Part shown: positions 2,943 through 28,016 of the stretch, piece by piece
Layout: every line of letters starts with the position of its first letter
Numbering within the stretch: the stretch's first letter is position 1
Assembly (NCBI RefSeq): GCF_006345805.1
Contig: NW_021827532.1
Span: 1-28,016, forward strand
Reading direction: 5' to 3'
Source: Octopus sinensis
Taxonomy: Eukaryota
DNA: 28,016 nucleotides
Position numbers and translations under genes: made by a program
The notes under the pieces: model-generated
The model's input: only the letters and a program-made list of their open reading frames with translations
Told to the model about the DNA's origin: nothing
Database searches by the model: none

Positions 2943-2985
<43 letters not shown>

Positions 2986-3090: not shown

Positions 3091-3135
<45 letters not shown>

Positions 3136-4346: not shown

Positions 4347-4400
<54 letters not shown>

Positions 4401-6144: not shown

Positions 6145-6910
<766 letters not shown>

Positions 6911-7430: not shown

Positions 7431-7578
7431 GACGTGGCTATGTGGTAAGAAACTTGCTCCGCAAGCACGTAGATCCAGATTCAGTTTCCACTGCATGGCA
7501 TTTTGGGAAATTGTTTTCTACTATAGTCTCGGGATGACCAAATTTTGTGAGTGGATTGGGTAGACGGAAACCGAAATT
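7431..7578 (+). mobile_element. tRNA-derived SINE, 5' head (octopus family containing GAGTGGATTTGGTAGACGGAAAC)
   Basis: A-box-like TGGCTATGTGG, a degenerate B box, a CORE-like TTGGGAAATTGTTTTCTACTATAG, then GAGTGGATTGGGTAGACGGAAACCGAAA. Matches my recollection of an abundant Octopus SINE. Confidence 0.65.
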
Positions 7579-7604
7579 TTATAGGTTCTGTTGATTTGGG
7601 GTAA

Positions 7605-9960
7605 TCCTGTATATGTTGAGCTAAAGGGTGAAAGCCGAGCTGAGGCGATTTTCTTCAAAGAATTGAATCTTTCAGGCAACGTCTCCCTGCGATTGAAGAT
7701 GGCAACTGAATTCTGTAAGCTGCTTCTTTCAAGAGATTTTCGTAATTCCATATATTTTCCCCCCATAATTCTGAAGTGGTTAATTCAATCATTTCCACTT
7801 CAAAACTATCCTGTATATTTGTTTTTGAGCCAAAATGTGAGAGATTAAATGAGTTCGTTTTCAAATCCCTCAAAGTCGGGTTTCATGAGAAATGAAAATA
7901 TAGGAGCATCTGTTTCGAAATATTTATCTCACTTGAAAATTCTTCTTTCAACGTTGCAATATATTTTTGAAGTTCGTTTTTATTAAATATTAAATCGATT
8001 TGAATAATCTTTTACATTTGGAAAGTATTTTTATGTATTGCTAAATTTATCACGCAAAAAAATCTGATTTTAACAAAATCCTTTCCAATATTCAAAAACA
8101 TCAAGTACTGTTTGACCTCTCTCTTGTAAATGCAAATTTTAATCATTCAAGTACCTGTCACTTAGAAGCATCAGTTTAAATAACCCGTCTTCGTTGTTCA
8201 ATTCTGGCAACTGTTTCCTTTCAAGAAATATTCTTCTAAGCATGATACAAATCTGTTCAAAACATTACCCCGACAAAGCCAACGGACTGTAAGGACCGTG
8301 CGATGCGAGTTGACAAGAATGGCTCTTTAGTACCACATCACACAGCCCTTACAATAAAGAGAAAATTGATAGTACCATCTATTTGCCAGATGGATAAAGG
8401 AGACAACCGCGTAGAATGATTAAAAGAAGATTTATTGATATGTTAACAGATGTGTCTGTGTGTGCATCATGTATACTGAACGATAGACATGCCGTCATGA
8501 GAACAGAATGTATGCGTTGGGTTCATAGATGTAGGAGACAATTAGAGGTATATGTTGAACGTGATGTCGTGGCTGTGATGCTGCTGCCTGGGTAACTTGT
8601 ACAGGAATTCATACTGGTTGTATATTTGTTGTTGACCCATGATGAAGTAATTCATGAACAGTGAAGTGTTGGAACCTGGGTGCATCGCTTGCAGAGCTGT
8701 GTACATAGAGAGATGATGTTGAAGACGTTAAGGACATGGTGATAGCGACGAAGATGGAGGTTGTTGGAATGCTGTTGGACAAAGTTGGTAAGTCTCTGGA
8801 ACTGGCTGTGTCTTTGTGGTCAGAGGCTAGTCCTTAAAAGGTCTGGAACCAAAAGACGAAAGGAGAAAAGGGGGAGCGTTTATAAGGAGAAGTAGGCCAA
8901 AACGGGGTAGAGAACAGGCTGACTCCGACTGGTTATACGCGGCAGTTTGGCGCGACAAATTGCGCCAATACCAACTAATCAGAGTAGTGGACAGAACGGG
9001 ATCCAAATAGCGGCAAAAGGCTAGCTGTTCCATGCTACTCTCGAATGCACGTATATATAATAAATGGGAGAGAGAATTTTAACCGAGTCTACGCTGCAGG
9101 ACTTTACTGTGAAGTGGAAGTCTGCATATTCGCTGTCCAGTTCCTGCAGAAGAGACTTAAATTGTCTGTGAGTCAGTGAAGAGCAAGAAACCATGAAGTT
9201 AACTATTTTAACAACAGTTTCCACGACAGAACTCAAGCTTTGTGACGAAAGTTTTGCAACTAAATTTTCCTGATGTACAATGCAATTAAAACACATTACA
9301 CTGCGTGTGTGATTTCAAGACGCTTAAAAATCTTTTTTTCCTTCCACCCACTGCACGTGCACCCAGTAGTAATACAAAATATTTTATTTGTATTAATGGC
9401 TTGATTTTCGAAATAATTTAGAAATGCAGTCAGAATGTCCTGTCCTGTAGATGTATTGGTAAGAGGAATAATCAAACAACATGATTCTTCGTAAATACGA
9501 TCATTGTCCCTGTATCTTGCAACAATTGCTAGGTGCGCCATGTCATTCACTTGAGTACTTTCATCGATAGGGGTCACTGAATGCAGCAGCTTTTTGTAAT
9601 CTAACTTTCTGTGTTATAATTATGTTTTCAGCTATATCAGTTACACGTCTCTCAACTGATCATGCAGAAGTTGTTATTTCTTGAATTCGAGACAGTATTT
9701 TTTCAGCGTTTGCTTAAACACTGAACAAAATTTTAGCAATTCTCAAAAAAGTTTTTTTGATAAATTCTCCGGCTGTAAAAGGTTTACCTTTCTCAGCTAT
9801 ACATTAAGCAATAGTCTAACTACATTATTTAGCTTCATTGTTGGTTCCAAGTATTTGAACAAAACCAGAAGTGCTTTTTTTGTAACTAGAAATAGCCCTT
9901 TTTATGACTTGCCTTTTATCAACAAAATTTTTTGGAAGATCGCGCTTTGACAGTTCCATT
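7605..9960 (-). mobile_element. Decayed hAT (Buster/Charlie/SPIN-like, GTF2IRD2-type) transposase, interrupted by a solo LTR
   Basis: Minus-strand motifs appear in the expected order: IAEKGKPFTAGEFIK, SVERRVTDIAE, IDESTQVNDMAHLAI (first catalytic D), TSTGQDI, FCITT(D)G, NCIVHQENL (CxxH), LTHRQFKSLLQELDSEY, VRWLCRGNVLNRF, and LPERFNSLKKIASARLSPFSSTY (dimerisation domain, truncated before CE). Many stops and frameshifts. Confidence 0.92.
8288..9098 (-). mobile_element. 811-bp solo LTR with 4-bp target-site duplication
   Basis: The insert starts TGTAAG and ends GCTGCA (TG...CA). It is flanked by GGAC at 8284-8287 and 9099-9102. Removing it and one TSD rejoins the transposase at V-R-W. On the minus strand, TATAAA (8879-8884) precedes AATAAA (8431-8436), the U3-R-U5 order. 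Confidence 0.8.
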
Positions 9961-10029
9961 TCAGATGATTGCAACAACGGTGAAAAAATATCAATGTTAA
10001 TTTATTGATGCATTTGGGCAAGTCTATGT

Positions 10030-10695
10030 CTGAATTGTCTGTGTGTTTTGGGTTCTGTTTCTTTTTCTTTTGGGTGTTCAGGCGACTACTTGCCATTTTG
10101 GTCTTTCGTCGTCCCTATCCGCGCAAGGTATGTCTGAGTGCTCCGAACAGGGGAGGGGCAAATCTTGTAGAGCTTTTTGGCGTTGTCCTATTCATAACGT
10201 TGTTGCGTTTTTGGTGGTGGGGACCGGGGTTGATGCTGTTGTTTTTGCTGCTGCCCGTGCTGCTGCGATTAGTGTTGCTGCTACTGTTATTCTTGATTTT
10301 GTAGCCACGATGGTCACCTGCCTCTGTTGGTGCTGTTGTTATTGTTGTTATTGTTGCTGTGGTGGTGGTGTTGATGATGTTGGCAAAATTGAGAGGCTCC
10401 TTTCTCTAATTTGTTGTGGGCAATAGAAGAATTTTAGATGATTTGTGTCCCCACACAGATGATACCGAAACCATCAGCTTTCAAAGGCCACGTGGAGGTT
10501 GGTGCCAAAGTGTGAATTTATGATATCTGGAATTGTGTCCAGACTTTGGGTGTCCATTTTCACCCACAATTTTAGGCCTTGACCCGAATAGTTTTGTTTG
10601 TAAAGTTTCCGCATCTGTAAGATGCTCGTTTTGACCTATATGTCCAAGAGGACATCTACCAGCAAGAATCAGCCGTCTATTTCTGGTGGTGTGTC
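10030..10695 (-). mobile_element. L1/Tx1-like non-LTR ORF1 remnant with a degenerate CCHC zinc knuckle
   Basis: Minus strand reads PPEIDG*...GQGLKLWVKM...IPDII...LHVAFES*WFR-YHLCGDTNHLKFFYCP (Cx2Cx4Hx5C with the first C>Y, 10420-10464). A T/A/Q-rich low-complexity tract and KWQVVA*TPKRKR follow, as in LINE ORF1 tails. Recognised by motif only. Confidence 0.55.
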
Positions 10696-11136
10696 TTCTT
10701 TTTTAGGGTCAAAGTGGATTGATTCCTTGCCTTCTCTTCATTTTTCTGTTATGTTTTTGTTGGTGCTGATGGTTGTGATGCTGTTGTTGTTGTTGCTACA
10801 ACTACTGCTGCTGCTGCTGTCTTTGCTTTGTTTCTCAAAAATATTAACAAGCGGAAGTGACAAAATGTCAAAACGGATGATGTAAGAACCTTTACTTGCC
10901 TCGATTTGGGAAGCCAGACTGAACTTTTTCTTTTTAAAATATAAATTTGTAGTTTTTAAAACTCAAAATTCGCCTTTAAGGGGCGAATTCTGGCCACCGC
11001 AGCTAGCCCCGCTTACAGCGAGATGGGTTCTGTGGTCAATAAAATTTTGAAAACAACATTGTAACAACAATTCTAAAGAAAACTTAGAGCTCCGAACAAC
11101 TAGTCTCCAAAACCGACACAATATAATAATAACAAT

Positions 11137-11320
11137 AAAGAAATGGAGAAACTTTCAAAATACAACGACCTGGAAATAGAGGTAACTCGAACGAGGAATC
11201 TAAAAACAAACAATTCCTATCATAGTAAGTGCATTAGGCATGATAACAAATTATTCAGACAAATACATAACAAAAACACCAGGATTTACAAACACATATA
11301 ACATACAGAAAATTGCATTG
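11137..11320 (+). mobile_element. R4/Dong-type non-LTR retrotransposon C-terminal restriction-like endonuclease fragment
   Basis: KEMEKLSKYNDLEIEVTR..NLKT / frameshift / TIPIIVSALGMITNYSDKYITKTPG..NIQKIAL matches the KExEKxxKYxDL...P(I/V)(I/V)(I/V)GALG...Q tail of REL-type LINEs. Confidence 0.75.
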
Positions 11321-11339
11321 TTGAATTATTCTTTTAGAT

Positions 11340-12113
11340 CAGTATTTCTCAACGAGGATATCAGAGGAGAGTTTCAGGGAGTCGCTGGCGATGTATCGTG
11401 ATGATCAAAAATCCAACCTGCTAAAATTTGGTTAGTGATTCAAACTGCAGACTCAACGCAAAATGGTCACATTTAATTCAAAGCGTTAAAAATGGTATGA
11501 AAACAATTGGTATGAGTTCACAAAGTCCAAGCGATTAATAGGGAAAAACCTTCCAGGCTACATCCCGAAAATTCATTTCTTTGCCGAATTTCTACAATGT
11601 TTACGGCGATTCGTCTTGCTTTTTTATTTTTCATGCAATTTACGCATGCTTGCACGCGTGGTGAACACAGTTCACGTCAAACAGCCGACTGAGTAAAGTT
11701 CACTATTCAATGCATGGGAGAAGGCCTAAACAAACACATTATCGATTTTTGCACTTGCGAACAGAAATAGCGCAGTTCAATTTTCATTCGCCTAAACTTT
11801 AAGTGACCCATGTTTGGTGGTTCTACGATTTGTTGGCTAGGAGGAGATGTGCCGGGAAGTAAAAGACACAGACACACACACAGATACACAGATAGACACA
11901 CAAGTTGAGTTTTATATATATAGATTTACGTTCATGCTTTATTCTTGTTTTCAGTAAAAAAAAGTAAGTAAAATGAAATCATGATAGTTTATTTAAGGAA
12001 AAACTTTGTATGAACGCCTCTAAAACTGGGGTACAGGAAAAATCCTTTGATACAATACAGTTGCTTGTGGGGTCCCATCGGATTTAACGACCCAACCGGG
12101 TTTACAACCACTG
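11340..12113. mobile_element. Possible hAT/Charlie-type MITE or two hAT ends
   Basis: The left end CAGTATTTCTCAAC and the right-end reverse complement CAGTGGTTGTAAAC are 10/14 identical, and both resemble Charlie TIRs. No matching 8-bp TSD (TTTTAGAT vs CGTATTTA). Confidence 0.45.
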
Positions 12114-12457
12114 CGTATTTAGGGTCTACGAAACTCATGGTTCGCTAGTTTTGTATATATATATATTAGACCCCCCTCCGAGTATGGTTACAGATGTGTG
12201 TAGGAGTGCGTTTGTGTTTGTGTGTGTGAGTTTGGTGTTTTCTTTGATATTATTACGCGTTAAAGCTATAATATTTTTATAAATTTCATCACACTAATTT
12301 ATCGAAATTTAATTTTTTAGCTTTAAATATCCAATCATGAAAACAAAAATATATTTGTCATGTGGAACAGGGGTGAATTTTAGTTCCTTCAGAGAATCTG
12401 CAATTTGAAGTTAATAACATTGAAATCTCTGACATTTCCTATTTTCTTCTTTTACAG
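11964..12457 (+). other. Possible 5'-UTR intron of the LRR gene
   Basis: A consensus donor A|GTAAGTA at 11964 is upstream of the strong acceptor at 12457. The ATG lies 20 nt inside the exon, so a non-coding upstream exon is expected. Pairing is not proven. Confidence 0.3.
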
Positions 12458-12477
12458 ATAAATCTACGCCTGGCAAT

Positions 12478-12668
12478 ATGTTTCACCACGTAGTATCATT
12501 TAGACGGTCTCTTGTGTTGATACTGTGTACGATATTGTTTTTGGAGACTCAAGCTGATTCAGATATATGCAAGATATGTACTTGCTATTCACTTACAACG
12601 AGTGTAAATTGTGCAAATCGCAATTTACAATCAATTCCACAACCAATTCCGACGAATGTTGAATATTT
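12478..12668 (+). CDS. LRR gene, first coding exon: signal peptide + LRR N-terminal cap (LRRNT)
   Basis: Acceptor TTTTCTTCTTTTACAG ends at 12457, ATG at 12478, donor TT|GTAAGT at 12669 (phase 2). Peptide MFHHVVSFRRSLVLILCTILFLETQA (hydrophobic signal) then DSDICKICTCYSLTTSVNCANRNLQSIPQPIPTNVEY-L, i.e. the CxxCxC-x8-C..L..IP..IP LRRNT pattern. Confidence 0.93.
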
Positions 12669-13125
12669 GTAAGTATTTGACACTTTCTACGTATTTTCCA
12701 CATCCAATATTTAAATTCTCATTGATATGTTCTCAGCTAATCGCTTATGCTGTTCATCTCACAGCTTTAAGCACAATCTTATGTTAGAGTAAAACAAATC
12801 GATATGTTACCTGCTGTGAAGTCAAATAAACTGTTTCTTACCATATTGAATTTATAATATATAACATCGCATACACAGAGATTGGATATGACTAGTATCT
12901 GACTTTGATTTCATTTGTCTGAACTTATCAAATCTTACGGTATATTCAATGAACGGACAGTATAAAAACTTTAGTGCTAAGAAAACGTGTATTCCACATA
13001 GTTATATTATATCATTAATTAGTTGAATTGTCGCTTATTATTACAGTAATATGATATAATATCAGTTGATCGTGTCACAGAATAATTGTTAATTATTGTT
13101 TGTGTTAATTTTATAATAGAATATG

Positions 13126-13330
13126 CAGCGAGCTATCAGAATCGTTGTGCACGCCAGACAAAATGTTGAGCGGTATTTCGTTCGTCTTTACGTTTCGATT
13201 TTAAATTCTGTCGAGGTTGACTTTGTTTTCATTCTTTTGGAGTCGGTAAAATAAATAGCAATTATCTCTGAGATCAATGTAAAGGACTTGTCCCTTTCCC
13301 AAAATTTCAGGTTTGTTCCTATGGAAGAAA
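13126..13330 (+). mobile_element. Second SINE family copy in intron 1
   Basis: GCAGCGAGCTATCAGAATCGTT...GCGGTATTTCG...AAATTCTGTCGAGGTTGACTTTG...GAGTCGGTAAAATAA resembles the common octopus SINE (GGCGAGCTGGCAGAA...GAGTTCAAATTCCGCCGAGGTCGACTTTGCCTTTCATCC), from memory. Confidence 0.6.
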
Positions 13331-13744
13331 TTATTATTTTTATAATTAAAAATGAAACAGATGGATTAAACAGCAGATAATGACGAGATCCGCTTAAATT
13401 ACCAAATTCTTAAAATACCTAAGTGAAGAAATCAAAATAGTGTTATTTTAACAAATTATGAGGAATTTATTTTTGATAGAATGTCATCAGTAAAATTTAC
13501 CCTATCATGAACACAATAAAACTTATTACAAAATTATGCAAGCTTAATTGAAGTTTCGGCTGATTGATGTATCCCCGTTCACCTGAAATCTTACGCAATT
13601 TTTAAGTAAATTATTAAAATTTAACGTCTCAAGAAATGGAATAGAATAAAAAAGAGAAATTATTTGATACATGCAATCATAACAAATACTCTGTTGCAAC
13701 ACATTGCTCTTCCAGGTGATTACTTCCAGTTAATTGGCTTGCAT

Positions 13745-13836
13745 CATTGCATTAATCACCTTAAACTTTCAGTTTTAATCAAATATTCATTAGAATATTT
13801 GATTAAAACTGAAAGTTTAAGGTGATTAATGCAATG
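13745..13836. repeat. Perfect palindrome: 44-bp arms, 4-nt loop (ATTA)
   Basis: 13745-13788 CATTGCATTAATCACCTTAAACTTTCAGTTTTAATCAAATATTC is the exact reverse complement of 13793-13836. Confidence 0.98.
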
Positions 13837-14084
13837 GATCAATTCATTCGATCAGATCTATTTCTCAAAACATTTGGAAGGTTTTGACAAAATGAGAAAT
13901 CCTAATGTAAAATAAAGAGAAAAGTTTCAATAATGGAATCCCTAAATCTCGTATAACTCAAGATGTTGAATAGTAAAGTTGAAGTTCTGTTTAATAAGTT
14001 AGATATTTTCATCGTTCATAACTTGAGCGAGGTTTGGCACAAATCATTTGACCGTCTAGCAGAATACATCACGTTCTGACACAC

Positions 14085-14230
14085 GGCAATCTGACTTCAA
14101 GTCCCGCCAAGGTCAACCTTGGGTCATTCATTTCCGAGATCAATAAAGAACCATAACAGTTCAATGAACAAATGCAACTATGAGGACCTCGAATAAGACA
14201 CCTTGCAGTATATTGTCCAGTTGTCTGTGA
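14085..14230 (+). mobile_element. Strongly decayed copy of the second SINE family
   Basis: CTGACTTCAAGTCCCGCCAAGGTCAACCTT...GAGATCAATAAA aligns loosely to the copy at 13126. Confidence 0.4.
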
Positions 14231-15044
14231 CCTGAGTTAAAATTACACACTTTTTATTTTACCGATTTTGGAGAAAGGATCATACAAGTTTTTTAACCCC
14301 TGCAAGATCTCCAATACTTGTGAGACAGATATCATTAATATTCCGTTTGAGCTGTTGCAGGTTAACCTTTACAGGAATGATTAACAGGGATGCTATTTAG
14401 GGGATGAAGGATTTAGCATAGATGGCTAATAATGGTAACAAACTGAGGTTTAATACAGCAAGAGTAAGGAGCAAAGGGCTAAAAAAAGACGAAAAAACTA
14501 AGGCAATGTATGTTGCCACATCCCTTTTTTAAATAACACCCTTAACCAGTTAAATCACCATGTAAGTTTGTTCTCCTTTGTAGCACATAACTCAAAATTA
14601 TATCAGGGTTTCCCCACTCTACCATCACCAATTCTATTAATAAATCCCTTTCTATTTCTGTTATGTTTTCCTTCCTAGTCTATTATTTCAGTCTTGAAGT
14701 TTTGGGGGTTTATTTATTTTTGTGAAGAACTTTTATGCATCAATTATGCAAAGGAGAGGAGTTTACTTTTGCAAAGATAAATTACTTTTGACAGCAAAGT
14801 GTAATAACAAATAGAATGCTCATTGGACAGAAACAAGATATTTATAAATAAAGCTGACTTCTGAGATGATAAAAATATCTTCCACTGAAAACTGATGTTG
14901 CAACGAAGGCTTTGTAAATCTAATTCAAATCACAAATATTTTGAACATCCATTCTTTTCTCATATTTTACATGCATGTGTGTTTTCCATTCATACTTTAC
15001 GTGGTGACTTAAATCTGTTTCATATCTTATATAATAAAATATCC

Positions 15045-15787
15045 GAAAATGCAAACAGAACCTTCGTGAAGACGAAAAGAAAGCCTTACAAACTGCAAAT
15101 TGACAATTTAATCATCCTAAACGAAACCGATTGGGGAAGGGTGATAGCAGTCACGGACCAAGACTACTATAAAGATAAAATATTGGAAACAGACTAATCC
15201 TGCTACAAGGAAGAACCAAGACACGCGGAGAAAGTAATAATGAATACACCCAAAATTAAGATAAATGAATACCAACGTTCGTTCACAGATAAAGAGAAAG
15301 ATTATTTATGCAGCTCTGTAATGAAAGAGAGTAATTTCTATGGATCACCCAAGATCTGCGAATGCTCCAAAATGCAAGGATCAGCATATAAAAATACTAA
15401 GACCTACTGACATCAAATTGAGACCAACAGTTGCTGGACCTTGAGCCCCAACACAACAACTGAGCCATCTTTTGGATATACTCCTCAAACCGTTGTGCCC
15501 ATTAATGCCCAGCTATACCCGAGACGATATGGATTTCATCAAACACATTCCACCCACTGTCCCAGAACGTACTATACTTAAAAGATTTGACTAATCTTTG
15601 TACAAATACATCACACTTTGGGCCTGGGAGCAATCAAACACTGGGTAGAAATCATAGCGGACGGATGGACGAACGCTTCAAAACGCATTTCCAAAGACAC
15701 ACACCTGGAACTAGAAGACAACACCTTTAGATTCGATAATAAACTGTATCGACAGATAAAAGGACACCACTACGGGGACGAGGTTCA
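15045..15787 (+). mobile_element. Penelope-like element reverse transcriptase remnant (pseudogenised) in intron 1
   Basis: Frameshifted translation gives KQNLREDEKKALQ, NLIILNETDWGRVIAVTDQDYYKDKIL (cf. IIIKxADKGxxxVxMDxxxY), FYGSPKI (FYGLPKIHK), KLRPTVAGP, LSHLLDILLKPL, RFD*SLY (SFDVxSLYT) and EDNTFRFDNKLYRQIKG (QxxGxxMG region). It contains stops and frameshifts. Confidence 0.9.
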
Positions 15788-16087
15788 CACACATACTCGC
15801 ACCCAGAGGTAGATATACATATGTGTGTATATTTCTGAGTGTATATGTGTGTATGTGCGTATATATGCATACATGTGCGTGTATGTGTGTGGAAGTGTGT
15901 GTTGGTACATAGAGAGGCGAAGCGGATACTCGAGGTTGTGCAAGTAAAGTAGGAAATAAACATGAAACGGCTGCCACATTAAGACATTCTTCTTCTCCTG
16001 CTGTTTCTTTTTTCTTCTACTTATTCTTCTTCTTCTTCTTCCTTTTCTTCGTTTTATTCTTTTTCTTCTCCTCCTTCTTCTTCCTCT

Positions 16088-16119
<32 letters not shown>

Positions 16120-16836
16120 TCCGTCTTCTTCTTCTTCTTCTTTTTCTTCTCCCTCTTCTTCTCCCTCTTCGTCTTCGTCTTCTTCTTCCTTTTCTTCTTC
16201 TTCTTTTTCTTCTCCCTCTTATTCTTCCTCTTCCTCTTCTTCTTCTTCTTTTTCTTCTTATTCTTTTTCTTCTTCTTTTTCTTCTCTGTACTTTCTGCTT
16301 AGTCACTGGTCTCTCTCTTTTACATTCTCTGCCAATTCTTCCTTTTATTCTCATCCTCCTGCTCTTCCTGCTCCTTCTGCTGCTACCCCAAGCTGCCCCT
16401 CCTCAGTCTTTCCTTCTTTTGTCCTCCTCCTAACCTCCCCACCTCTCCTCCCCCTCCGCCACCTCAACCTCCTCCTCACTCTCATTCGTCTTCTACTTCT
16501 TCTTCGTCTTCTTCTTCTTCTTTTTCTTCTTCTTCTTCTTCTTCTTCTTCTTCTTCTTCTCCTTCGTCTTCTTCATTTTCTTCTTCTTCTTCGTCTTCTC
16601 CTTCGTCTTCTTCTTCTTCTTCGTCTTCTCCTTCGTCTTCTTCTTATTCTTATTCTTCCTCTTCTTCTTCACCTCCTCCCCAATTCTCTTCCTTTTCTTT
16701 TTCTTCTATTTCTTCTTTTTCTTCTTCTTCGTTATCTTTCTCCTTTTTCTTCCTTTCATTCTCAAGTCACGGTGTTTGATATCGTATCACAAATATTTTC
16801 CATATAATCTATTTTACTCTTTCTTTACTGCTATAG

Positions 16837-16908
16837 ACGTCTTGGCAACAACAACATTGCCACCATCAAAGAAGGTGCGTTCACGGGGCTTTCGAATTTA
16901 AAAGAGTT
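16837..16908 (+). CDS. LRR exon A1 (72 nt, phase 2/2): (L)RLGNNNIATIKEGAFTGLSNLKE(L)
   Basis: CTTTACTGCTATAG acceptor, TT|GTAAGT donor, exactly 24 codons, in frame with exon 1, typical-class LRR consensus LxLxxNxIxxIxxxxFxGLxxLxxL. Confidence 0.95.
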
Positions 16909-17897
16909 GTAAGTTCGTTTAGTTTCTTGATACTATTTTCCGAAAGTAATAATTGATGCTGATATATAAGCTCACAAATGTATAAAATTTCAGACTGAAC
17001 CAAACAAAATCAATTCAAATTTGTAGAATGAACAAGATTTAGGAAGATACAAAGAGAATAGGGGAGAGCGAGACAATGTGAAAGAAAGAGAGAGAATTTT
17101 GGGGAGAAAGTGAAATAATAGGAAAAAATATAATGTTCCTTTATTGTAGTTGCTTTGTTTCAACTCGCATCTCAATAACTCAGTTTTGTTCCCCAAATTT
17201 CAATGATTTTGATATGAATTTGTATTAGAAATGGTAACGTTTGTGAGTTTACATGTTTGCATCTAATATTTTTATCTGAAGTATATGTGTATGTTCATAT
17301 ATAAGTGTAGTTCTGTGTGAAATGTGACTATATTATTCCTTTATTTTATATTTTGCATCCTCCTCCATTTCTTATTTCAATATTCTCCTCCGTGTTTCGA
17401 TATTATCATTCAACTTCGAATTTTGTCATTCACTTCACTTTATTTATGTAATAGAGCAACTGAAGTGGAAGCGGAAAATATATATTCGAATAATATAGTC
17501 ACATACATTCTATCTGTAAACCTGAAATACTTACTGTACTTGTAAGCTGGAATATTTGGCCTCATACAATTAAACTGCTGATATATTTCTTGTAAGCATG
17601 TGTTTTCTAATATTCTTGTGACAATGAAGCGATATGAAATAAATAATCTCTCCCACCATATTTCCCCAAGTGTGAATGGGAATATGTGTGATGTGAGTGT
17701 GCATATCGCATTCCGTCGTTGATACTATGAATATAAAAATGCGTATGAGTGCATTTGAATATGTTGATTTCTGATTCCGTATATTCCCTGATTTTTCAGC
17801 CATGTCTTCTCGCCCAAAATTTATCGATCTATCCTTGAATTATTTCCTGATATTTTAAGAACAATTTCAGTTTCGTCTTCAACACCATGATTTTCAA

Positions 17898-17928
<31 letters not shown>

Positions 17929-18558
17929 CTTCTTCTTCTTCTTTCCTACTTCTCTTCCTCCTCCTTCTCCTTTGTCCTCTTCTTCTTCCCCTTCCTCCTA
18001 CTCCTCCGCCTCCACCTATTTTCCTCTTATTCATTCTTTTCCTTCTTTTTCTTTTTCTCCTTCTTTTTTCATGCTTCTTCTTCTTCTTCTCCTATTACTT
18101 CTTCTTTTCCTTCTCTTCTTCTTCTTCTTCTTCTTCTTCTTTTCCTTCATCTTCTTCTTTTTCTCCTCACCGTCCTCTTGTACTTCTTCTATTTCTTCCT
18201 CCTCTTTTTAATCTTTTACATCTTCTTCTTCTAGTCTACACTCTGCACCTCCTCCTATTTTCCTCCCCCTCCTGCATCTCCTTGTCCTTCCCTGTCCTCA
18301 TCCTTCTTCACATCCCCTCCTCCTCCAACTCCTCCTTCTTCTACTTCTTCTCCCCCTCCACTTCCTCCTTGTCTTCTCCGTATCCCCTTCCCCTCCTCCC
18401 ATTCATCTTTCGCTTCTTCTTCTCCTCAATCTCTTTCCTCTTCCTCTTCTTCTCGTATTATTTTCCTATAATTTTGTCCCTTTTCATAAAGAACAATATT
18501 GAATATGTTATCGCAATTCACACTATGTCAATCTAACCAATATTGTTTCCTGCTTCAG

Positions 18559-18630
18559 ATATCTTTCCTACAATAAAATTTCAAGAATTGAAAAAGAGAT
18601 GTTTCAAGGCCTTCACAACTTAGAGAAATT
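18559..18630 (+). CDS. LRR exon C1 (72 nt, phase 2/2): (L)YLSYNKISRIEKEMFQGLHNLEK(L)
   Basis: TTTCCTGCTTCAG acceptor, TT|GTAAGT donor, 24 codons matching the LRR consensus. Confidence 0.95.
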
Positions 18631-19474
18631 GTAAGTTCTGTCAATGTTGTCGTTTATACATGAGGAATATACTGTCTTTAAATTTAATATCCCCTTATTT
18701 CCATGTTTTCTCACTCTCTATTACAGTAAATCATATTCAGTTCTCATATTCGTGTTATATTTATTTGATTGAGTCTGAACATGTCAATGACTGTCAGTTG
18801 ATAATTGTCTGCATAAAAATGTTATTCCTGCAAATATATATGTGTATGTTCATATGTATCTATGTATATGCACTATTAATATAAGTTTTAGCTACTATTT
18901 TCTTACATATTGTTCTCTTGATTCTGTGGTGCCGTGTGGTTATTTATCAACACTTCCACCGAGATAATTTTTTTGTTATTGTTGTTGTTGTTGTTTTGTT
19001 CTTCTTCTTGTAATGATCCTTTACCCCTCCTCCTCCACCTCCTTCTCCTCCATTTTCTTCTTCTTATTATTGCAATTCTCCTCCTCAACCTCCCCTCTTC
19101 GTCCTACTCATCATCCTTTTTCTTCAGTTTCTTCGTTCTCTTCTATTTTTCTTCTTCTTCATCTTCTTCGTCTTTTTCTCCTTACCTTCTTCATCTTCTT
19201 CATGTTCCTCTTCTTCTTCTACTTTTTCCTCTTCTTTGTCTTCTTCTTTTCCTTCTTATTCTTTTTCTTCTTCTTTTTCTTCTCTGTACTTTCTGCTCCG
19301 TCACTGGTCTCCCTCTTTTCCATTCTCTGCCAATTCTTCATCGTATTCTCAGTCTCCTGTCCTTCCTGCTCCTTCTGCTGCTACCCCCAGCTGCCCCTCC
19401 TCAGTCATCCCTTCCTTTGCCCTCCTCCTAACATCCCCGCCTCTCCACATCCTCGTCAATTCTCCTTCCTCTTC

Positions 19475-19506
<32 letters not shown>

Positions 19507-19680
19507 CTTCTTCTTCTTCTTCTTCTTCTTCTCCTTCTCCTTCTCCTTTCTAGTTCTTCTTCTTCTTCTTCTTCGTAATCTTTCTTCTTTTTCTTCCTTT
19601 CATTCTCAAGTCACAGTGTTTGATGTCGTATCACAAATATTTTCCATATAATCTATTTTACTCTTTCTTTACTGCGACAG

Positions 19681-19752
19681 AGTACTTGGTACCAACAACA
19701 TTGCAACCATCAAAGAAGGTGCATTCACGGGGCTTTCAAATTTAAACTACTT
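19681..19752 (+). CDS. LRR exon A2 (72 nt): (L)VLGTNNIATIKEGAFTGLSNLNY(L)
   Basis: CTTTACTGCGACAG acceptor, TT|GTAAGT donor; paralog of A1 (11 nt differences). Confidence 0.93.
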
Positions 19753-22518
19753 GTAAGTTCGTTCAGTTTCTTGATACTATTTTCCGAAAGTAATAATTGA
19801 TGCTGATATATAAGCTCACAAATGTATAAAATTTCTGACTGCACCAAAGAAAATCAATTCGAATTTGTAGAATGAACATGATTTAAGAAGATACAAAGAG
19901 AATATGAGTGAGCGAGACAATGTGAAAGAAAGAGAGAGAAAGTGAAATAATAGGGAAAATATAATGTTCCTTTATTGTAGTTGCTTTGTTTCAATTCGCA
20001 TCTCAATAACTCATTTTTGTTCCCCAAATTTCAATGATTTTGATATGTATTTGTATTAGAAATGGTAGCGTTTGTGAGTTTACATGTTTGCATCAAATAT
20101 TTTTATCTGAAGTATATGTGTATGTTCATATATAAGTGTAGTTCTGTGTGAAATGTGACTATATTATTCCTTTATTTTATATTTTGCCTCCTCCTCCATT
20201 TCTTATTTCAATATTCTCCTTCGTGTGTCGATATTATCATTCAACTTCGAATTTTTCATTCACTTCACGTTATTTATGTAATAGAGCAACTGAAATGGAA
20301 GCGGAAAATATATATTCAAAAAATATAGTCACATACATTCTTTCTGTAAACCTGAAATACTTACTGTACTTGTAAGCTGAATATTTCGCCTGATACAATT
20401 AAACTGCTGATATATTACTTGTAAGCGTGTGTTTTCTAATATTCTTGTGACAATGAAGCGATATGAAATAAATAATCTCTCTCACCAAATTTCCACAAGG
20501 GTGAGTGGGAATATGTGTGATGTGAGTGTGCATACCGCATTCCGTCGTTGATACTATGAATATAAGAATGCGTATGTGTGCATTTGTATATGTTGATTTC
20601 TGATTCCGTATATTCCCTGATTTTTCAGCCATGTCTTCTCGCCCAAAATTTATCATTCTATCCTTGAATTATTTCTTGATATCTTAAGAACAATTTGAGT
20701 TTAGTCTTCAACACCATGATTTTCAATATACCTTCTATCTTCTTCTTCTTCTTCTTCTTCTCTTCTTCTTCTTCTTCTCTTCTTCTTCTTCTTCTTCTTC
20801 TTCTTCTTCTTCTTCGTCTTCTTCTTCTACTCCCCTACTTCTTCTTCCTTTCTTCTTCTTCGTTTTCGTCTTTTTCTTCTTCTTCTTCATCTTCGTCTTT
20901 CTCTTCTTCGTCGTCGTCTTCTTTTTCTTCTTCTTCGACTTCGTCTACTTCTTCTTCCTCCGCCTCACCTCCTGCTCATCATCCTCCTCCTTTTTCTTCT
21001 ATTCTTCTTCATTTTCTTGTTCTTCTCCTTCTTTTAAACTATTCTTCTTCTTCTCCTCCTCCACCTCCTCCTCTTTCTTTTCTTCATCTAATTTTATTCT
21101 CTTCTTCTTCATCTACATTTACTTCTTGTAATTCACTTCCTCCTCCCACCACCCCACCCCCTCCTTTTTCTTCTTGTAATTCTCGTCCACCTCCACTCCT
21201 CTCCCTTCTTGCTCTTTTGTCTTCTTCTTCTTCTAATTCTTATTCTTATTCTCCTTCTTCGTCTTCTTCTTCTTCTTCTACTTCTGTTCCTCGTCTTCCT
21301 CCATCTTTTCCTTTTCTTCTTCTCTTTCTACCAAATCTTTTTTTCTTCGTCTTCTACCTCTTCTACACTTTATACTTCTTCATATTCTTCTCCTCCTCCT
21401 CTTTTCTGGTCTTCTTCCCCTTCATCCTCCTCCTCTTCCTTCTTCTTCTTCGTCTTCTTTTTTCTTCTTCTTTTTCTTCTTTTTCTACTTCTACTTCTAC
21501 TTCTCTTCCTCCTCCTCCTCCTCCTCCTCCTTTCTCCTTATTCTTCTTCTTCTTGTACTTCTCCTCCTCACCTTCCTCCTTATTTTTCTTTTTCTTCAAC
21601 TTCTCTTTCTTCTCTCATTTCTTCTACTCTTTCTTATTCTTCTATTTCTCATTACTTCTATTTACTTCTCCTCTTCCGTCTCTTTCTTCTTCATATTTTC
21701 ATTTTGTTATTCTCCTCCTCCTTCTTCTTCATTTTTTTCTTTTTCTCTAACTTCTTCTTCTTCATCATCCTCCTCCACCTCTTGCTTCCTCTTCCTTCTT
21801 CTTCTCTTACTTCTACTGCTTCCTGTTCTTCTTCTTCCACAACTACACCTCCTCCTTTTTCTTCTTCTGCTTCTTCTTCTTCTTCTTCTTCTCTTCCTCC
21901 TCCTTCTTCTTGTAATTCTTTCCTTCCCCTCCCCCTCCTTATCCTCTTTCTTCTTCTTGTTTTTCTTCCTCTCCTACTTCTTCTTTCTTCTACTTCTCCT
22001 CCTTCTCCTCCTCTTTCTTCTTCTTCTCATCTTCTTTTTTGTAAATCTCCACCTCCTTCTCCTCTTCCTCCTCCTTCTTCATCGCCTTCTTCTTCATCTT
22101 TTTCCTCTTCTTCTCCTTTTTCCTCTCTTTTACCTATTCTTCTTCGTCTCCTCACCCTCCTCCTCTTTTTAATAATTTACATCTTTTTCGTCTACTCTAC
22201 CCTCTGCTCCTCCTCCTATTTCCCCCACCCCTCCTTGTTCTACTCCGTCCTCAGCCTTTTTCCTCTCCTTCGTTCCTCCACCTCCAACTCATCCTTCTTC
22301 TAATTCTTCTCCCCCTCCACTTCCTCCTTGTCTTTTCCGTATCCCCTTCCCCTCCTCCCATTCTTCTTTGGCTTCTTCTTCTCCCTCAATCTCTTTCCTC
22401 TTCCTCTTCTTCTCGTATTATTTTCCTATAATTTTGTCCCATTTCATAAAGAACAATATTGAATATGTTATCGCAATTCACACTATGTCAATCTAACCAA
22501 TATTGTTTCCTGCTTCAG

Positions 22519-22590
22519 ATATCTTTCCTACAATAAAATTTCAAGAATTGAAAAAGAGATATTTCAAGGCCTTCACAACTTAGAGAAATT
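22519..22590 (+). CDS. LRR exon C2 (72 nt): (L)YLSYNKISRIEKEIFQGLHNLEK(L)
   Basis: Same splice sites as C1; one difference, ATG>ATA (M>I). Confidence 0.93.
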
Positions 22591-23609
22591 GTAAGTTCTT
22601 TCAATGTTGTCGTTTATACATGAGGAATATACTGTCTTTAAATTTAATATCCCCTTATTTCCATGTTTTCTCACTCTCTATTACTGTAAATCATATTCAG
22701 TTCTCATATTCGTGTTATATTTATTTGATTGAGTCTGAACATGTCAATGACTGTCAGTTGATAATTGTCTGCATAAAAATGTTATTCCTGCAAATATATA
22801 TGTGTATGTTCATATGTATCTATGTATATGCACTATTAATATAAGTTTTAGCTACTATTTTCTTACACATTGTTCTCTTGATTCTGTGGTGCCGTGTGGT
22901 TATTTATCAACACTTCCACCGAGATAATTTTTTTGTTATTGTTGTTGTTGTTGTTTTGTTCTTCTTCTTGTAATTATCCTTTCCCCTCCTCCTCCACTTC
23001 CTTCTCCTCCATTTTCTTCATCTTATTATTATTGCAATTCTCCTCCTCAACCTCCCCTCTTCGTCCTACTCATCATCCTTTTTCTTCAGTTTCTTCGTTC
23101 TCTTCTATTTTTCTTCTTCTTCATCTTCTTCGTCTTTTTCTCCTTACCTTCTTCATCTTCTTCATGTTCCTTTCTTCTTCTACTTCTTTCTCTTCTTTGT
23201 CTTCTTCTTTTTCTTCTTATTCTTTTTCTTCTTTTTCTTCTCTGTACTTTCTGCTCCGTCACTGGTCTCCCTCTTTTTCCATTCTCTGCCAATTCTTCAT
23301 CTTATTCTCAGTCTCCTGTCCTTCCTGCTCCTTCTGCTGCTACCCCCAGCTACCCCTCCTCAGTCATCCCTTCCTTTGCCCTCCTCCTAACATCCCCGCC
23401 TCTCCACCTTCTCGTCAATTCTCCTTCCTCTTCTACTTCTTCTTCTTCTTCTTCTTCTCCTTCTCCTTCTCCTTTCTAGTTCTTCTTCTTCTTCTTCTTC
23501 TTTGTAATCTTTCTTCTTTTTCTTCCTTTCATTCTCAAGTCACAGTGTTTGATGTCGTATCACAAATATTTTCCATATAATCTATTTTACTCTTTCTTTA
23601 CTGCGACAG

Positions 23610-23681
23610 AGTTCTTGGTGCCAACAACATTGCAACCATCAAAGAAGGTGCATTCACGGGGCTTTCAAATTTAAACTACTT
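23610..23681 (+). CDS. LRR exon A3 (72 nt): (L)VLGANNIATIKEGAFTGLSNLNY(L)
   Basis: Same splice sites as A2; two differences (GTA>GTT silent, ACC>GCC T>A). Confidence 0.93.
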
Positions 23682-26371
23682 GTAAGTTCGTTCAGTTTCT
23701 TGATACTATTTTCCGAAAGCAATAATTGATGCTGATATATAAGCTCACAAATGTATAAAATTTCAGACTGAACCAAACAAAATCAATTCGAATTTGTAGA
23801 ATGAACATGATTTAGTAAGATACAAAGAGAATATGAGAGAGCGTGACAATGTGAAAGAAAGAGAGAGAAAGTGAAATAATAGGAAAAAATAATGTTCCTT
23901 TATTGTAGTTGCTTTGTTTCAATTCGCATCTCAATAACTCATTTTTGTTCCCCAAATTTCAATGATTCTGATATGAATTTGTATTAGAAATGGTAACGTT
24001 TGTGAGTTTACATGTTTGCATCAAATATTTTTATCTGAAGTATATGTGTATGTTCATATATAAGTGTAGTTCTGTGGGAAATGTGACTATATTATTCCTT
24101 TATTTTATATTTTGCATCCTCCTCCATTTCTTATTTCAATATTCTCCTTCGTGTTTCGATATTATCATTGAACTTCTAATTTTGTCATTCACTTCATGTT
24201 ATTTACGTAATAGAGCAACTGAAGTGGAAGCGGAAAATATATATTCGAATAATATAGTCACATACATTCTATCTGTAAACCTGATGATAATACTACTGTA
24301 CTTGTAAGCTGGAATATTCGCCTGATACAATTAAACTGCTGATATATTCTTGTAAGCGTGTGTTTTCTAATATTCTTGTGACAATGAAGCGATATGAAAT
24401 AAATAATCTCTCTCACCAAATTTCCACAAGGGTGAGTGGGAATGTGTGATGTGAGTGTGCATACCGCATTCCGTCGTTGATACTATGAATATAAGAATGC
24501 GAATGAGTGCGTTTGAATATGTTGATTTCTGATTCCGTATATTCCCTGATTTTTCAGCAATGTCTTCTCGCTCAAAATTTATCGATCTATCCTTGAATTA
24601 TTTCCTGATATCTTAAGAACAATTTCAGTTTCGACTTCAACACATTCATTTTCAATATAACTTCTTTCTTTTCTTCTTCTTCTTCTTCTTCTTCTTCTTC
24701 TTCTTCTTCTTCTACTCCTCTACTTCTTTTTCCTTTCTTCTTCTTCGTCTTCGTCTTTTTTCTTCTTCTTCTTCTTCTTCGTCGTCGTCGTCGTCGTCTT
24801 CTTTTTCTTCTTCTTCGTCTTCGTCTTCTTCTTCTTCCTCCGCCTCACCTCCTGCTCATCATCCTCCTCCTTCTTTTTCTTCTCTTCTTCTTAATTTTCT
24901 TGTTCTTCTCCTTCTTCTTTTAAACTATTCTTCTTCTTCTCCTCCTCCACCTCCTCCTCTTTCTTTTCTTCTAATTTTATTCTCTTCTTCTTCTTCACTA
25001 CATTTACTTCTTGTAATTCACTCCTCTCCACCACCCCACCCCAACCTTTTTCTTCTTGTAATTCTCGTCCACCTCCACCCCTCTCACCTCTTGCTCCTTT
25101 TTCTCTTCTTCTTCTAATTCTATTCTTATTCTCCTTCTTCTCCTTCTTAGTACTTCTTCTTATCTACTTCTGTTCCCCGTCTTCCTCCATCTTTTCCTTT
25201 TCTTCTCTCTTTCTACCACTTCTTTTTTCTCGTCTTCTACTTCTTGTACACTTTATACTTCTTCATATTCTTCTTCTCCTCTCCTTTTCTCTTCTTCTAC
25301 CCCTTCATCCTCCCCTCTTTCTTCTTCTTCGTCGTCTTCTTTTATTCTTCTTTTTCTTCTTTTTCTACTTCTACTTCTACTTCTCTTCCTCCTCCTCCTC
25401 CTTCTCCTTCTTCTTCTTCTTCTTTTACTTCTCCTCCTCACCTTCCTCCTTATTTTTCTTTTTCTTCAACTTCTCTTTCTTCTACTTCATTTTCTTCTAC
25501 TTCTTCTTATTCTACTTTCTATTTCTTCATCTACTTCTCCTCTTCCGTCTCTTTTTTCTTCATATTTTCATTTTGTTATTCTCCTCCTCCTTCTTCTTCA
25601 TTTTTTTTCTTTTTCTCTAACTTCTTCTTCTTCATCATCCTCCTCCACCTCTTGCTTCCTCTTCCTTCTTCTCTTACTACTACTGCTTCCTGTTCTTCTT
25701 CTTCCTTTACCTCTACACCTCCTTTTTCTTCTTCTGCTTCTTCTTCTTCTTCTTCTTCTCCTCCTCCTCCTTCTTCTCGTAATTCTTCCTTTCCCCTCCC
25801 CCTCCTTATCCTCTTTCTTCTTTTTGTTTTTCTTCCTCTCCTACTTCTTCTTTCTTCTACTTCTCCTCCTTCTCCTCCTCTTTCTTCTTCTTTTCATCTT
25901 CTTTTTTGTAAATCTCCCCCTCCTTCTCTTCTTCCTCCTCCTTCTTCATCGCCTTCTTCTTCTTCTTTTTCCTCTTCTTCTCCTTTTTCTTCTCTTTTAC
26001 CTATTCTTCTTCGTCCCCTCACCCTCCTCCTCTTTTTAATAATTTACATCTTTTCGTCTACTCTACCCTCTGCTCCTCCTCCTATTTCCCCCATTCCTCC
26101 TTGTTCTACTCCGTCCTCAGCCTTTTTCCTCTCCTTCGTTCCTCCTCCTCCAACTCCTCCTTCTTCTACTTCTTCTCCCCCTCCACTTCCTCCTTGTCTT
26201 CTCCGTTTCCCCTTCCCCTCCTCCCCTTCTTCTTCTCCTCAATCTCTTTCCTGTTCCTCTTCTTCTCGTATTATTTTCCTGTAATTTTGTCCCCTTTCAT
26301 AAAGAATAATATTGAATATGTTATCGCAATTCACACTATGTCAATCTAACCAATATTGTTTCCTGCTTCAG

Positions 26372-26443
26372 ATATCTTTCTTACAATAAAATTTCAAGAA
26401 TTGAAAAAGAGATGTTTCAAGGCCTTCACAACTTAGAGAAATT
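26372..26443 (+). CDS. LRR exon C3 (72 nt): (L)YLSYNKISRIEKEMFQGLHNLEK(L)
   Basis: Same splice sites as C1; one silent difference, TCC>TCT. Confidence 0.93.
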
Positions 26444-28016
26444 GTAAGTTCTTTTAATGTTGTCGTTTATACATGAGGAATATACTATGTCTTTAAATTT
26501 AATATCCCCTTATTTCCATGTTTTCTCACTCTCTATTACTGTAAATCATATTCAGTTCTCATATTCGTGTCATATTTATTTGATTGAGTCTGAACATGTC
26601 AATGACTGTCAGTTGATAATTGTCTGCACATTAAAAATGTATTCCTGAAATATTATGTGTATGTTCATATGTATGTATGTATCTGCACTATTAATATAAG
26701 TTTTAGCTACTGTTTTCTTACACATTGTTCTCTTGATTCTGTGGTGCCGTGTGGTTATTTATCCATACTTCCACCAAAATAAATTGTTGTTATTGTTGTA
26801 GTTTTCGTTCTTCTTCTTGTAATTCTCCTTGTTCTTCTTCTTCTCCTTCTCCTTCTCCTCCTTTTCCTTTTCTTCTTCTTCTTCTTCTTCACATCCTCCT
26901 CCTCCTCCTTCCCCTTCTATTTCTTTTTCCTTTTCTTCTTTCTCTGCTTCTTCTTCTTTTTCTCCTCCTCCTCCTTCTTTTCTTCTTCTTCTTCTTCTTT
27001 TTCTCCTTCTTCTTCTTTTTCTCCTTCTGCTCCTCCTTCTTCTTTTTCTCCTCCTCCTCATTCTTCTTCTTCTTCTTCTCCTTCTTCGTCTCCTCCTCCT
27101 CCTCCTCCTCCTTCTTCTCCTTCTTCTTCTTCTTCTTCTTATTCTTCGTCTCTTCTACCTCCTTCTTCTTCTTCTTCTTCTTCTTCTTCTTTTTCTTCTT
27201 CGTGTTCTTCTTCTTGTTCCTCTTCTTCCCTTACTCGTTATATTTCCATATAAATTCTTTCTTCACATAATGAACATTATTCCATATTTCGTCGCAATTA
27301 CATACGATGTGAAACTAAGCAAGTTCTTTCCTGCTTCATATTCTTCTGAACGATGGACATTTTTTCGCATTCCTTAATATCTCGACGAAGCAACTAATGG
27401 ACTCTATTCATGATATATCCTTGAATGTGTCTGAGACATGAAACGACTGGGAATTATTTATCCGCATTGTCGAGATTAATTTCTTCTTCTTTTCCTTCTT
27501 CTTCTTCTCCTTCTTTTCTTCTTCTTCTTTTTCTTCTTCTTTCTTTTTTTCTTCTTCCTCCTCTTCTTCTTCTTTCTTTTTTTTCTTCTTCCTCTTCTTT
27601 TTCTTCTTCTTCTTCTTCTTTTTCTTCTTCCCTTCTTTTTCTTCTTCTTCTTCTTTCTTTTTTCTTCTTCTCCTTCTTCTTCTTCTTTTTCTTCTCCTCT
27701 TTCTTGTTCTTGTTCTTCTTCTTGTTCTTCTTCTTCTATATTAGCACTGAGGACATCCTCAATAAAATGAGTATTTTTGGTCACTCCAAGTTCTTCACAT
27801 GTTGTGTAGTGGACACTAAGGACTTGATTCCCTCTACCCATCTATTGACATCGATTTTGCTGGAGTATAATGTAATGAGATTGTCTGTGAAATGTGAAGT
27901 GAGGTCAACACGCGTGATCCGTGTCTCGTTCTTAGACTATATATTCTACCCCGCCAGATCACAGATTCTTAGACCACCCACCATCACTTCAGCAGTAAAT
28001 AAATGCACCACTGAGC

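Follow-up and report, generated by a model that had tools for sequence, protein, structure and literature searches.

An alternating array of single-repeat LRR exons, with introns more conserved than exon ends, in an Octopus sinensis gene

How a gene encoding a leucine-rich repeat (LRR) protein acquires its repeats, and how recently it has done so, is the question raised by a 28,016-nt stretch of the Octopus sinensis genome (contig NW_021827532.1, positions 1 to 28,016 of the forward strand; hereafter the window), which contains the 5′ part of a gene with an array of short, alternating LRR exons. A first-pass annotation of this stretch had described six 72-nt LRR exons of two alternating types, each pair lying within a duplicated 3-4 kb unit whose introns were "about 95% identical by eye", and had proposed that the LRR solenoid is growing by whole-unit tandem duplication. 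The exon layout and the units were borne out by our analysis, with coordinates, splice sites and phase all consistent. Our reading of the locus, to which we give a probability of roughly 0.7 as a whole, is that the gene belongs to a young family of recognition proteins, confined to octopuses and either secreted or exposed on the cell surface. The family would have grown as frame-neutral exons of one LRR each, and also whole genes, were duplicated in tandem, with occasional gene conversion, and would have diversified at predicted ligand-contact residues. In this reading the exon structure, the homology of the units, the placing of the N-terminal part in the family and the divergence pattern are observed, whereas the C-terminal architecture of the gene, misalignment as a mechanism, selection and the biological role are inferred.

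By locating the exon cores in the sequence we placed six LRR exons on the forward strand between 16837 and 26443, in the order A-C-A-C-A-C:

16837-16908, + strand: LRR exon A1, peptide LRLGNNNIATIKEGAFTGLSNLKE, 84.7% identical to A2 and A3
18559-18630, + strand: LRR exon C1, peptide LYLSYNKISRIEKEMFQGLHNLEK
19681-19752, + strand: LRR exon A2, peptide LVLGTNNIATIKEGAFTGLSNLNY, 97.2% identical to A3
22519-22590, + strand: LRR exon C2, peptide LYLSYNKISRIEKEIFQGLHNLEK
23610-23681, + strand: LRR exon A3, peptide LVLGANNIATIKEGAFTGLSNLNY
26372-26443, + strand: LRR exon C3, peptide LYLSYNKISRIEKEMFQGLHNLEK, the last family exon in the window

Every one of these exons is exactly 72 nt long and lies between a pyrimidine-rich acceptor that ends in AG and a GTAAGT donor. 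Because they start with the third base of a leucine codon (TT/A) and finish with TT, all six are phase 1-1 exons that encode one 24-residue LRR apiece. The A-type consensus is L-x-L-G-x-NNIATIKEGAFTGLSNL-x-x (LxLGxNNIATIKEGAFTGLSNLxx) and the C-type consensus is LYLSYNKISRIEKEM/IFQGLHNLEK; A1 departs from A2 and A3 at codons 1, 4, 22 and 23 and at four synonymous sites. Repeat finding and self-BLAST resolved three colinear units (U1 to U3) of 2.8-4.0 kb, with A-to-A spacings of 2844 and 3929 nt and C-to-C spacings of 3960 and 3853 nt, and U2 aligned to U3 as a single colinear block of 3.7 kb. The units differ in length mainly through the (CTT)n tract of the A-to-C intron, which measures 334, 1418 and 1352 nt in U1, U2 and U3, respectively. 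Repetition of this kind is far beyond chance, and the six exons are true tandem copies. A six-frame motif scan and tblastn with eight family proteins revealed no further LRR exons in the 28 kb window, no other family exon or 3′ end of a neighbouring paralog was found elsewhere in it, and an Rfam search of the window returned no RNA family. The gene extends past the end of the window after C3.

The array follows the first coding exon of the gene:

12459-12668, + strand: first coding exon, with ATG at 12478, predicted signal peptide and LRRNT cysteine cap (MFHHVVSFRRSLVLILCTILFLETQADSDICKICTCYSLTTSVNCANRNLQSIPQPIPTNVEYL), and a phase-1 end TT/gtaagt

As this exon is preceded by an acceptor (cag) at 12458, a 5′ untranslated exon must lie farther upstream. 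The exon was placed by tblastn at 12478-12669, with a phase 1 donor after ...NVEYL, and showed 88-91% identity over 64 aa to two O. sinensis proteins (P0002 and P0004). A hydrophobic N-terminus and the pattern CxxCxC...C suggest a signal peptide and an LRRNT, the latter scoring 18.6 bits with the Pfam profile, below the cutoff of 25.8. For the spliced product of 208 residues, LRR_8 was matched at 170.8 bits (cutoff 27), the repeats fit LxxLxLxxNxL, and sequence matches in the PDB included ALS, TLR3, LRIG1 and LGR4, with E-values down to 1e-68; LGR4/5, LRIG1, TLR3 and LRRC15 were among the best. A single-sequence AlphaFold2 model of the product is an LRR solenoid with one strand per repeat, a confidence score (pLDDT) of 72, with 75-91 over the LRRs, and low confidence at residues 1-39; Foldseek searches with this model found chondroadherin as the best match (TM score 0.77), followed by LINGO-1 (0.70), with structures of variable lymphocyte receptors (VLRs) also among the fold matches. 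As modelled, the protein is an LRR solenoid of the standard extracellular kind, with a predicted LRRNT cap.

Relatives of the gene were sought with the spliced 144-residue LRR peptide as the query, and also by cluster look-ups and with the C-terminal half of an O. vulgaris member. The peptide matched short O. sinensis RefSeq proteins that all start MFHHVVSYRRSLVLILCTILFLETQ..., and five O. sinensis proteins (P0002, P0003, P0004, P0012 and P0020) have the N-terminal exon and the A and C types of LRR in common with the window. The closest protein, P0079, is 82% identical over all 208 residues and has the arrangement (A-C)x3 + C. A protein search with exon 1 alone yielded two proteins only, and an exhaustive search of representative sequences, dominated by giant LRR proteins, confirmed P0079 and P0069 and added only P0175. 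At the DNA level the window was compared with four loci that contain the N-terminal exon (L001-L004), all from O. sinensis and none from O. vulgaris. The same exon and intron types were found in all four as in the window, with exon 1 (MFHHVVSYRRSL...TNVEYL) followed by A-type and C-type LRR exons of 72 nt.

These sequences form a large family that spans O. vulgaris, O. sinensis and O. bimaculoides. Its members consist of a signal peptide, LRRNT, one to ten A and C LRRs in varied order, and a terminal LRR with LRRCT (…NPIEKYEDGAFLFLPSI…NNLMKCGCH…), after which come a cysteine-rich module ending in CCxGxLCN, which we read as Ly6/uPAR-like, and an HRM domain. Some members continue to GAIN/GPS and a class-B seven-transmembrane (7TM) domain (7tm_2). 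Pfam matches to GAIN (PF26588) and GPS (PF01825) are on record for P0063, P0064, P0070 and P0081, and 7tm_2 (PF00002) also occurs among the relatives; in our profile scan P0081, a more distant relative, matched 7tm_2 at 39.6 bits, and P0059 matched GAIN at 18.3 bits, below threshold. No 7TM exon was found inside the window by tblastn with family proteins, and the GAIN and 7TM regions of this gene would lie past the window end. Names given by NCBI vary and include 'adhesion GPCR G6-like' (GPCR, G-protein-coupled receptor), 'slit-like' or 'slit homolog-like', 'LRRC4-like', 'LRRC15-like' and 'chondroadherin-like'. To judge from architecture and names, and not from a sequence-by-sequence comparison, the family is probably the octopus-specific expansion described by Ritschard et al. 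2019 (PMC6408891).

The age of the units can be read from their introns. With gaps excluded, unique intron sequence in the window is 92-99% identical between units. In the A-to-C intron, the unique 5′ part of 980 nt is 95.4-95.6% identical for all three pairs, which makes the earlier estimate by eye an accurate one, and identity over the 3′ part is 92-96%; when the C1-to-A2 intron is compared with the C2-to-A3 intron in blocks of 100 alignment columns, identity ranges over 93-100%, except for a microsatellite length change of ~35 nt. An alignment of the 780 nt after the A exon, covering the three units of the window and seven A units from L001-L004, gave 90.6-96.9% identity across all pairs, and the window's own pairs (95.7-96.0%) were no closer than pairs between loci. 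The three window copies vary at 48 sites. At 36 of these the variant is private to a single copy and every O. sinensis copy has the other allele, and only two sites group U2 with U3. Private sites are ordered at random (27 runs seen and 27.6 expected; runs test, P = 0.48), and the intron is evenly diverse from end to end; conversion patches were rejected on the first result and conserved functional blocks on the second. This star-like variation suggests a burst of duplication followed by independent drift, with the units approximately as old as the family expansion, and on this alignment the intron identity of ~95% would date the family-wide burst and not a fresh local expansion. The proposed growth of the solenoid by whole-unit duplication is thus retained as far as the tandem A-C units of single-LRR cassette exons are concerned, but the intron identity on which it drew is no sign that this growth is recent. 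The flank upstream of the start codon is also conserved: the 200 nt before the ATG (12278-12477) are 97-99.5% identical to L001-L004, with 1-6 differing positions, and are more conserved than coding exon 1, which shows 88-92% protein identity to the same loci. Within exon 1 the signal peptide is 97-99.5% identical among loci and the differences cluster in the LRRNT loop.

The LRR exons have diverged further than the introns that separate them. Between units the A exons are 75-92% identical, against ~95% for the introns, and the C exons 82-93%, and in the nucleotide alignment nearly all of the change falls in three codons towards the start of the exon (1, 3 and 4) and two towards its end (22 and 23), which are the x positions of xxLxLxxN. 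For the A exons the mean pairwise difference is 0.53 at these 15 hypervariable sites, compared with 0.074 over the remaining 18 codons and an intron value of 0.05, or 0.04-0.09 in the intron next to the exons; for the C exons it is 0.28 at hypervariable sites versus 0.046 in the framework. Polymorphism affects 13 of the 15 hypervariable sites and 106 of 571 intron sites (Fisher P = 4e-8), and after Jukes-Cantor correction the excess at the hypervariable codons is ~18-fold. At the protein level, among 57 distinct A and 18 distinct C repeats from 24 family proteins, entropy reaches 2.1-3.3 bits at positions 2, 4, 5 and 24 and is mostly <1 bit elsewhere, and the variable positions are rich in D, Y, W, R, N, G and E. 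In established LRR structures the x positions of xxLxLxxN line the concave ligand-binding sheet, and the strands of the AlphaFold2 model cover the hypervariable positions. This pattern of divergence points to strong diversification of a predicted ligand-binding surface. Within the window, A2 and A3, and likewise C1, C2 and C3, are alike even at the hypervariable codons, which is the best sign of recent similarity among them.

One stretch of the array stands out as younger than the rest:

18450-19790, + strand: youngest repeat tract, copy 1 (end of the A-to-C intron, C1, C-to-A intron, A2 and ~40 nt more; limits approximate)
22410-23720, + strand: youngest repeat tract, copy 2 (C2, intron and A3; limits approximate)

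The two copies of this ~1.3 kb tract, which begins ~110 nt before C1, are 98-99% identical, versus ~95% in the adjoining A-intron. It appears to be the only clearly recent event in the array, and its register is C-A and not A-C. A second relationship is visible in the CT-rich sequence, where U2 and U3 have in common a derived tract that is longer by ~1.1 kb (~1.4 kb in total) and is missing from U1; because of this common expansion U2 and U3 can be regarded as sisters.

Since a single 72-nt phase-1 exon encodes each LRR, duplication, loss or skipping of an exon keeps the frame. The exons are of two types, A and C, and either type comes with a conserved intron of its own. On the reading that we prefer, (A-C)x3 would have arisen by tandem duplication of A-C during the family-wide burst, at a neutral divergence of ~5%. 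A later gene-conversion-like exchange of ~1.3 kb would have left C2-intron-A3 near-identical to C1-intron-A2. Change after duplication would have been focused on five codons per exon, encoding exposed residues of the concave face, at which the window copies would not yet have diverged. The long sense-strand (CTT)n tracts found in every intron are likely substrates for misalignment, and an older O. sinensis assembly breaks there too; that the tracts promote misalignment is suggested because GAA/TTC repeats are known to be unstable. The tracts, together with a remnant at the edge of the array, are as follows:

15987-16730, + strand: sense-strand (TTC)n/CT-rich tract upstream of A1; homology to the C-to-A intron of later units begins inside it, at ~16030
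17899-18232, + strand: (CTT)n tract of the A1-to-C1 intron, 334 nt
20732-22149, + strand: expanded (CTT)n/CT-rich tract of the A2-to-C2 intron, 1418 nt, colinear with 24661-26012
24661-26012, + strand: expanded (CTT)n/CT-rich tract of the A3-to-C3 intron, 1352 nt
26808-27228, + strand: (TTC)n tract past C3, in which homology to the other C-to-A introns fades
27229-27345, + strand: decayed remnant of the ~115 nt of pre-C-exon sequence, ~75% identical to 18448-18565 by local alignment

Repeat homology therefore starts at ~16030 and fades at ~26800-27200, both limits lying inside (TTC)n tracts. The CT-rich tracts of the A2-to-C2 and A3-to-C3 introns are 91% identical over one 300-nt stretch. In the remnant at 27229-27345 the acceptor AG is now AT and no LRR reading frame follows; it resembles a dead unit at the array edge, and hints at birth and death of units. 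Long sense-strand (CTT)n/CT-rich tracts of 150-1400 nt flank every LRR exon (15987-27737), with GC skew reaching -0.89. In the transcript the CUU runs of these introns resemble binding platforms for polypyrimidine-tract-binding (PTB) proteins and may play a part in exon skipping, which we raise as an idea only.

The chief rival to this account, which we consider rather unlikely, makes the exons old and the introns homogenised: ancient A and C variants would have been kept by selection while introns and flanks were evened out by gene conversion or a sweep, as in the genes of the major histocompatibility complex, in which case the 95% intron identity would be uninformative on the age of the array. 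Exon and intron genealogies are indeed decoupled, two linked synonymous dimorphisms of the A exons (CTT/CTG and GGT/GGA) not being mirrored in the intron identity matrix. The surface combination R-L-G-N is present in both A1 and the second A exon of L001 despite their introns being the least alike (92.3%), and exon 1 of the window resembles a mosaic in which some parts are like L001 and others like L002. In the A-exon framework the proportion of synonymous differences (pS) is 0.18 versus an intron divergence of 0.05, which leaves room for older exon lineages and so counts against our own account as well; this third-position excess is, however, not significant (P = 0.07), two of the variable sites are CpG, and the C exons show no excess (framework synonymous divergence, dS, 0.064). 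The mostly private, evenly spread intron variants, free of conversion-like patches and conserved blocks, also argue against homogenisation, and conversion tracts would have had to leave 12 nt untouched at one end of the exon and 6 nt at the opposite end, in all units alike.

Quite unlikely, in our judgement, is a recent and ongoing expansion of the kind proposed by the first-pass annotation, here taken to mean that the third unit arose through a very recent unequal crossover and that unit number is still polymorphic. The ~1.3 kb of near-identity between C1-intron-A2 and C2-intron-A3 would fit this, as would the likeness of A2 to A3 and of C1, C2 and C3 at hypervariable codons, and a simple crossover from two units to three duplicates exactly one C-intron-A block. 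The same crossover predicts a middle A-to-C intron whose 5′ part is near-identical to that of the third intron and whose 3′ part is near-identical to that of the first, but the middle intron is 95.4-95.5% identical to both others and has private changes at 20 of 65 typed sites, about as many as they do. A simple hybrid-unit model with one such crossover, which our first typing of sites had suggested, was rejected on these private changes and on the equal distance of the middle intron from its neighbours. A unit-adding crossover should also have left the middle A-intron almost the same as those beside it, and since it is not, the ~1.3 kb tract is better read as a gene conversion. That the array is an assembly artefact, with one or two A-C units inflated by repeat mis-assembly or retained haplotypes, is very improbable. 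The region is rich in long microsatellites, and the older O. sinensis assembly breaks in every homologous array; against this, the units differ by 4.5% in unique intron and by 15% between exons A1 and A2, their microsatellites are of three different lengths, the near-identical full period that such an artefact would give is nowhere present, and ten or more alternating A/C exons occur independently in the closest O. sinensis gene. Several further points weigh against the reading that we prefer. The choice between conversion and unequal crossover for the 1.3 kb tract was made only indirectly, and an ~18-fold excess at five codons is very high for point mutation and selection alone. The exons of the window are known from genomic sequence and not from transcripts, and its LRRCT, HRM, GAIN and 7TM regions, which would lie past the window, are assumed from relatives. 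Several close relatives are devoid of 7TM and end at a common C-terminus (...TEDRTAETNF), which means that the window gene could be secreted.

The arrays at the other loci are similar in layout. The best DNA match of the window was O. sinensis contig VCDQ01007574.1, with which it is colinear at 89-96% identity. Window positions 6318-19283 align colinearly with L002 at 89-96% identity, and L002 has A-C-A before its contig end. In the older O. sinensis assembly all four loci run out, 0.8-1.4 kb past their last annotated LRR exon, at a contig end that lies either beside a (CTT)n tract or inside an A exon, and contigs ending inside arrays account for truncated RefSeq models of 108-160 residues. 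Spacing from A to C exon is 1782 nt in L002 and 1571 nt in L003, short like that of U1. An A exon of L001 with the R-L-G-N surface codons of A1 (15914-15985 of VCDQ01006897.1) has a 1-nt deletion leading to a stop, and is either a pseudo-exon or the product of an assembly indel error. The O. sinensis gene for P0079 has 13 RefSeq isoforms of 409, 385, 361 and 337 residues, in steps of exactly 24 (one LRR). Across these isoforms ten or more LRR exons can be counted, arranged as A C A C A A C A C C, with surface residues all different. In several isoforms (P0079, P0242, P0233 and others) chimeric LRRs are formed by two A exons joined mid-exon at AAG/GT, which reflects either a mid-exon donor/acceptor-like site or mis-mapped paralog reads. 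We rejected the RefSeq isoforms as clean proof of cassette skipping, since these joins may stem from paralog reads; the 24-residue steps are a hint of skipping.

Upstream of the gene, window positions 1-7000 have 25-31% GC and dense AT, TG/TA and TATGTG-type microsatellites (e.g. 2064-3139), with no family exons. A direct repeat of ~200 nt (5882-6082 and 7084-7284, 88% identical, with AT microsatellites between the copies) has copies of 90-91% identity upstream of the genes in L002 and L004, and is probably a dispersed repeat element. At window position 9932/9935, L002 has an extra ~2.3 kb (L002 5140-7433), which was either inserted in one lineage or deleted from the other.

Several known systems resemble this locus in part. 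One LRR per ~72-nt phase-1 exon is familiar from LGR4-6, the glycoprotein-hormone receptors and Slit, which have the same exon-per-repeat layout and belong to the same class of 24-residue, LRRNT-capped LRRs, but differ in having fixed, conserved repeat numbers and diverged introns; we know of none among them with near-identical family-wide introns beside hypervariable exon ends. Plant resistance genes and VLRs are the classic cases of diversifying selection on xxLxLxx. The VLRs of jawless fish and plant LRR resistance genes resemble the octopus family in placing variation on concave beta-strand positions, in variable repeat number, and in the same richness of variable positions in D, Y, W, R, N, G and E. 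Unlike VLRs, which combine an incomplete germline gene with spliceless flanking cassettes, the window shows no sign of somatic assembly: it holds one germline gene with six ordinary exons on one strand, flanked by AG and GTAAGT and in frame with exon 1, and VLR-type somatic assembly is excluded because the splice sites are ordinary.

Ribonuclease inhibitor (RNH1) offers another parallel, since its two LRR types strictly alternate and its array grew by duplication of the pair as a module; each exon reportedly holds one A/B repeat pair, as Haigis et al. are said to have described in 2002. RNH1 is, however, a cytosolic protein with 28/29-residue repeats, both types in one exon, and an old and fixed number of repeats, whereas the window has 24-residue LRRs of extracellular type, one per 72-nt exon, in a young family of variable repeat number. 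Exon duplication in RNH1 is stated in PMC10400534. Closest in organism is 'group 3' of Ritschard et al. 2019 (PMC6408891), an octopus-only, co-localised group of adhesion GPCRs with LRRs in 5 of 22 members, which is expressed in the axial nerve cord, suckers and skin and shows branch-level positive selection, with no individual selected sites. The N-terminal exon and LRR types of the window match proteins whose longer relatives have HRM, GAIN/GPS and 7tm_2; single-LRR cassette exons, the alternation of A and C and introns more conserved than exons are not mentioned in the paper. The first-pass annotation knew of no description of such an array for a cephalopod LRR gene, and our literature searches likewise found none of the exon array itself or of the contrast between conserved introns and hypervariable exon ends, but the octopus-specific adhesion-GPCR expansion with LRRs had already been reported by Ritschard et al. 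2019. Tandem duplication of LRR exons, alternating types and genes with one LRR per 72-nt exon are all familiar, and what we did not find described is the octopus exon architecture and the intron/exon-end contrast.

Octopus genomes have lineage-specific expansions of recognition molecules such as protocadherins and GPCRs, and their mode of diversification is poorly understood. For these expansions the locus offers a concrete candidate mechanism, in which frame-neutral single-repeat exons multiply in tandem and change then focuses on predicted ligand-contact codons, with the remaining sequence, also that of the introns, kept nearly the same. Codons 1, 3, 4, 22 and 23 provide precise candidate sites in genes of the kind in which the 2019 study found no individual selected sites. 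As contigs that end in arrays have truncated these genes in the O. sinensis annotation, family size and domain content are probably undercounted. A more far-reaching idea, tentative and in our view improbable, is that the family is a germline-encoded combinatorial recognition repertoire peculiar to octopuses, with dozens of young genes, interchangeable cassettes, five codons changing at ~18 times the neutral level, and regulated skipping perhaps through (CUU)n and PTB. If that were true, each gene would yield many receptor surfaces, and the family would parallel in function the diversity of Dscam, clustered protocadherins or VLRs and could serve neural wiring, chemotactile sensing or immunity; were combinatorial use of the cassettes to be shown, the significance of the array would rise sharply.

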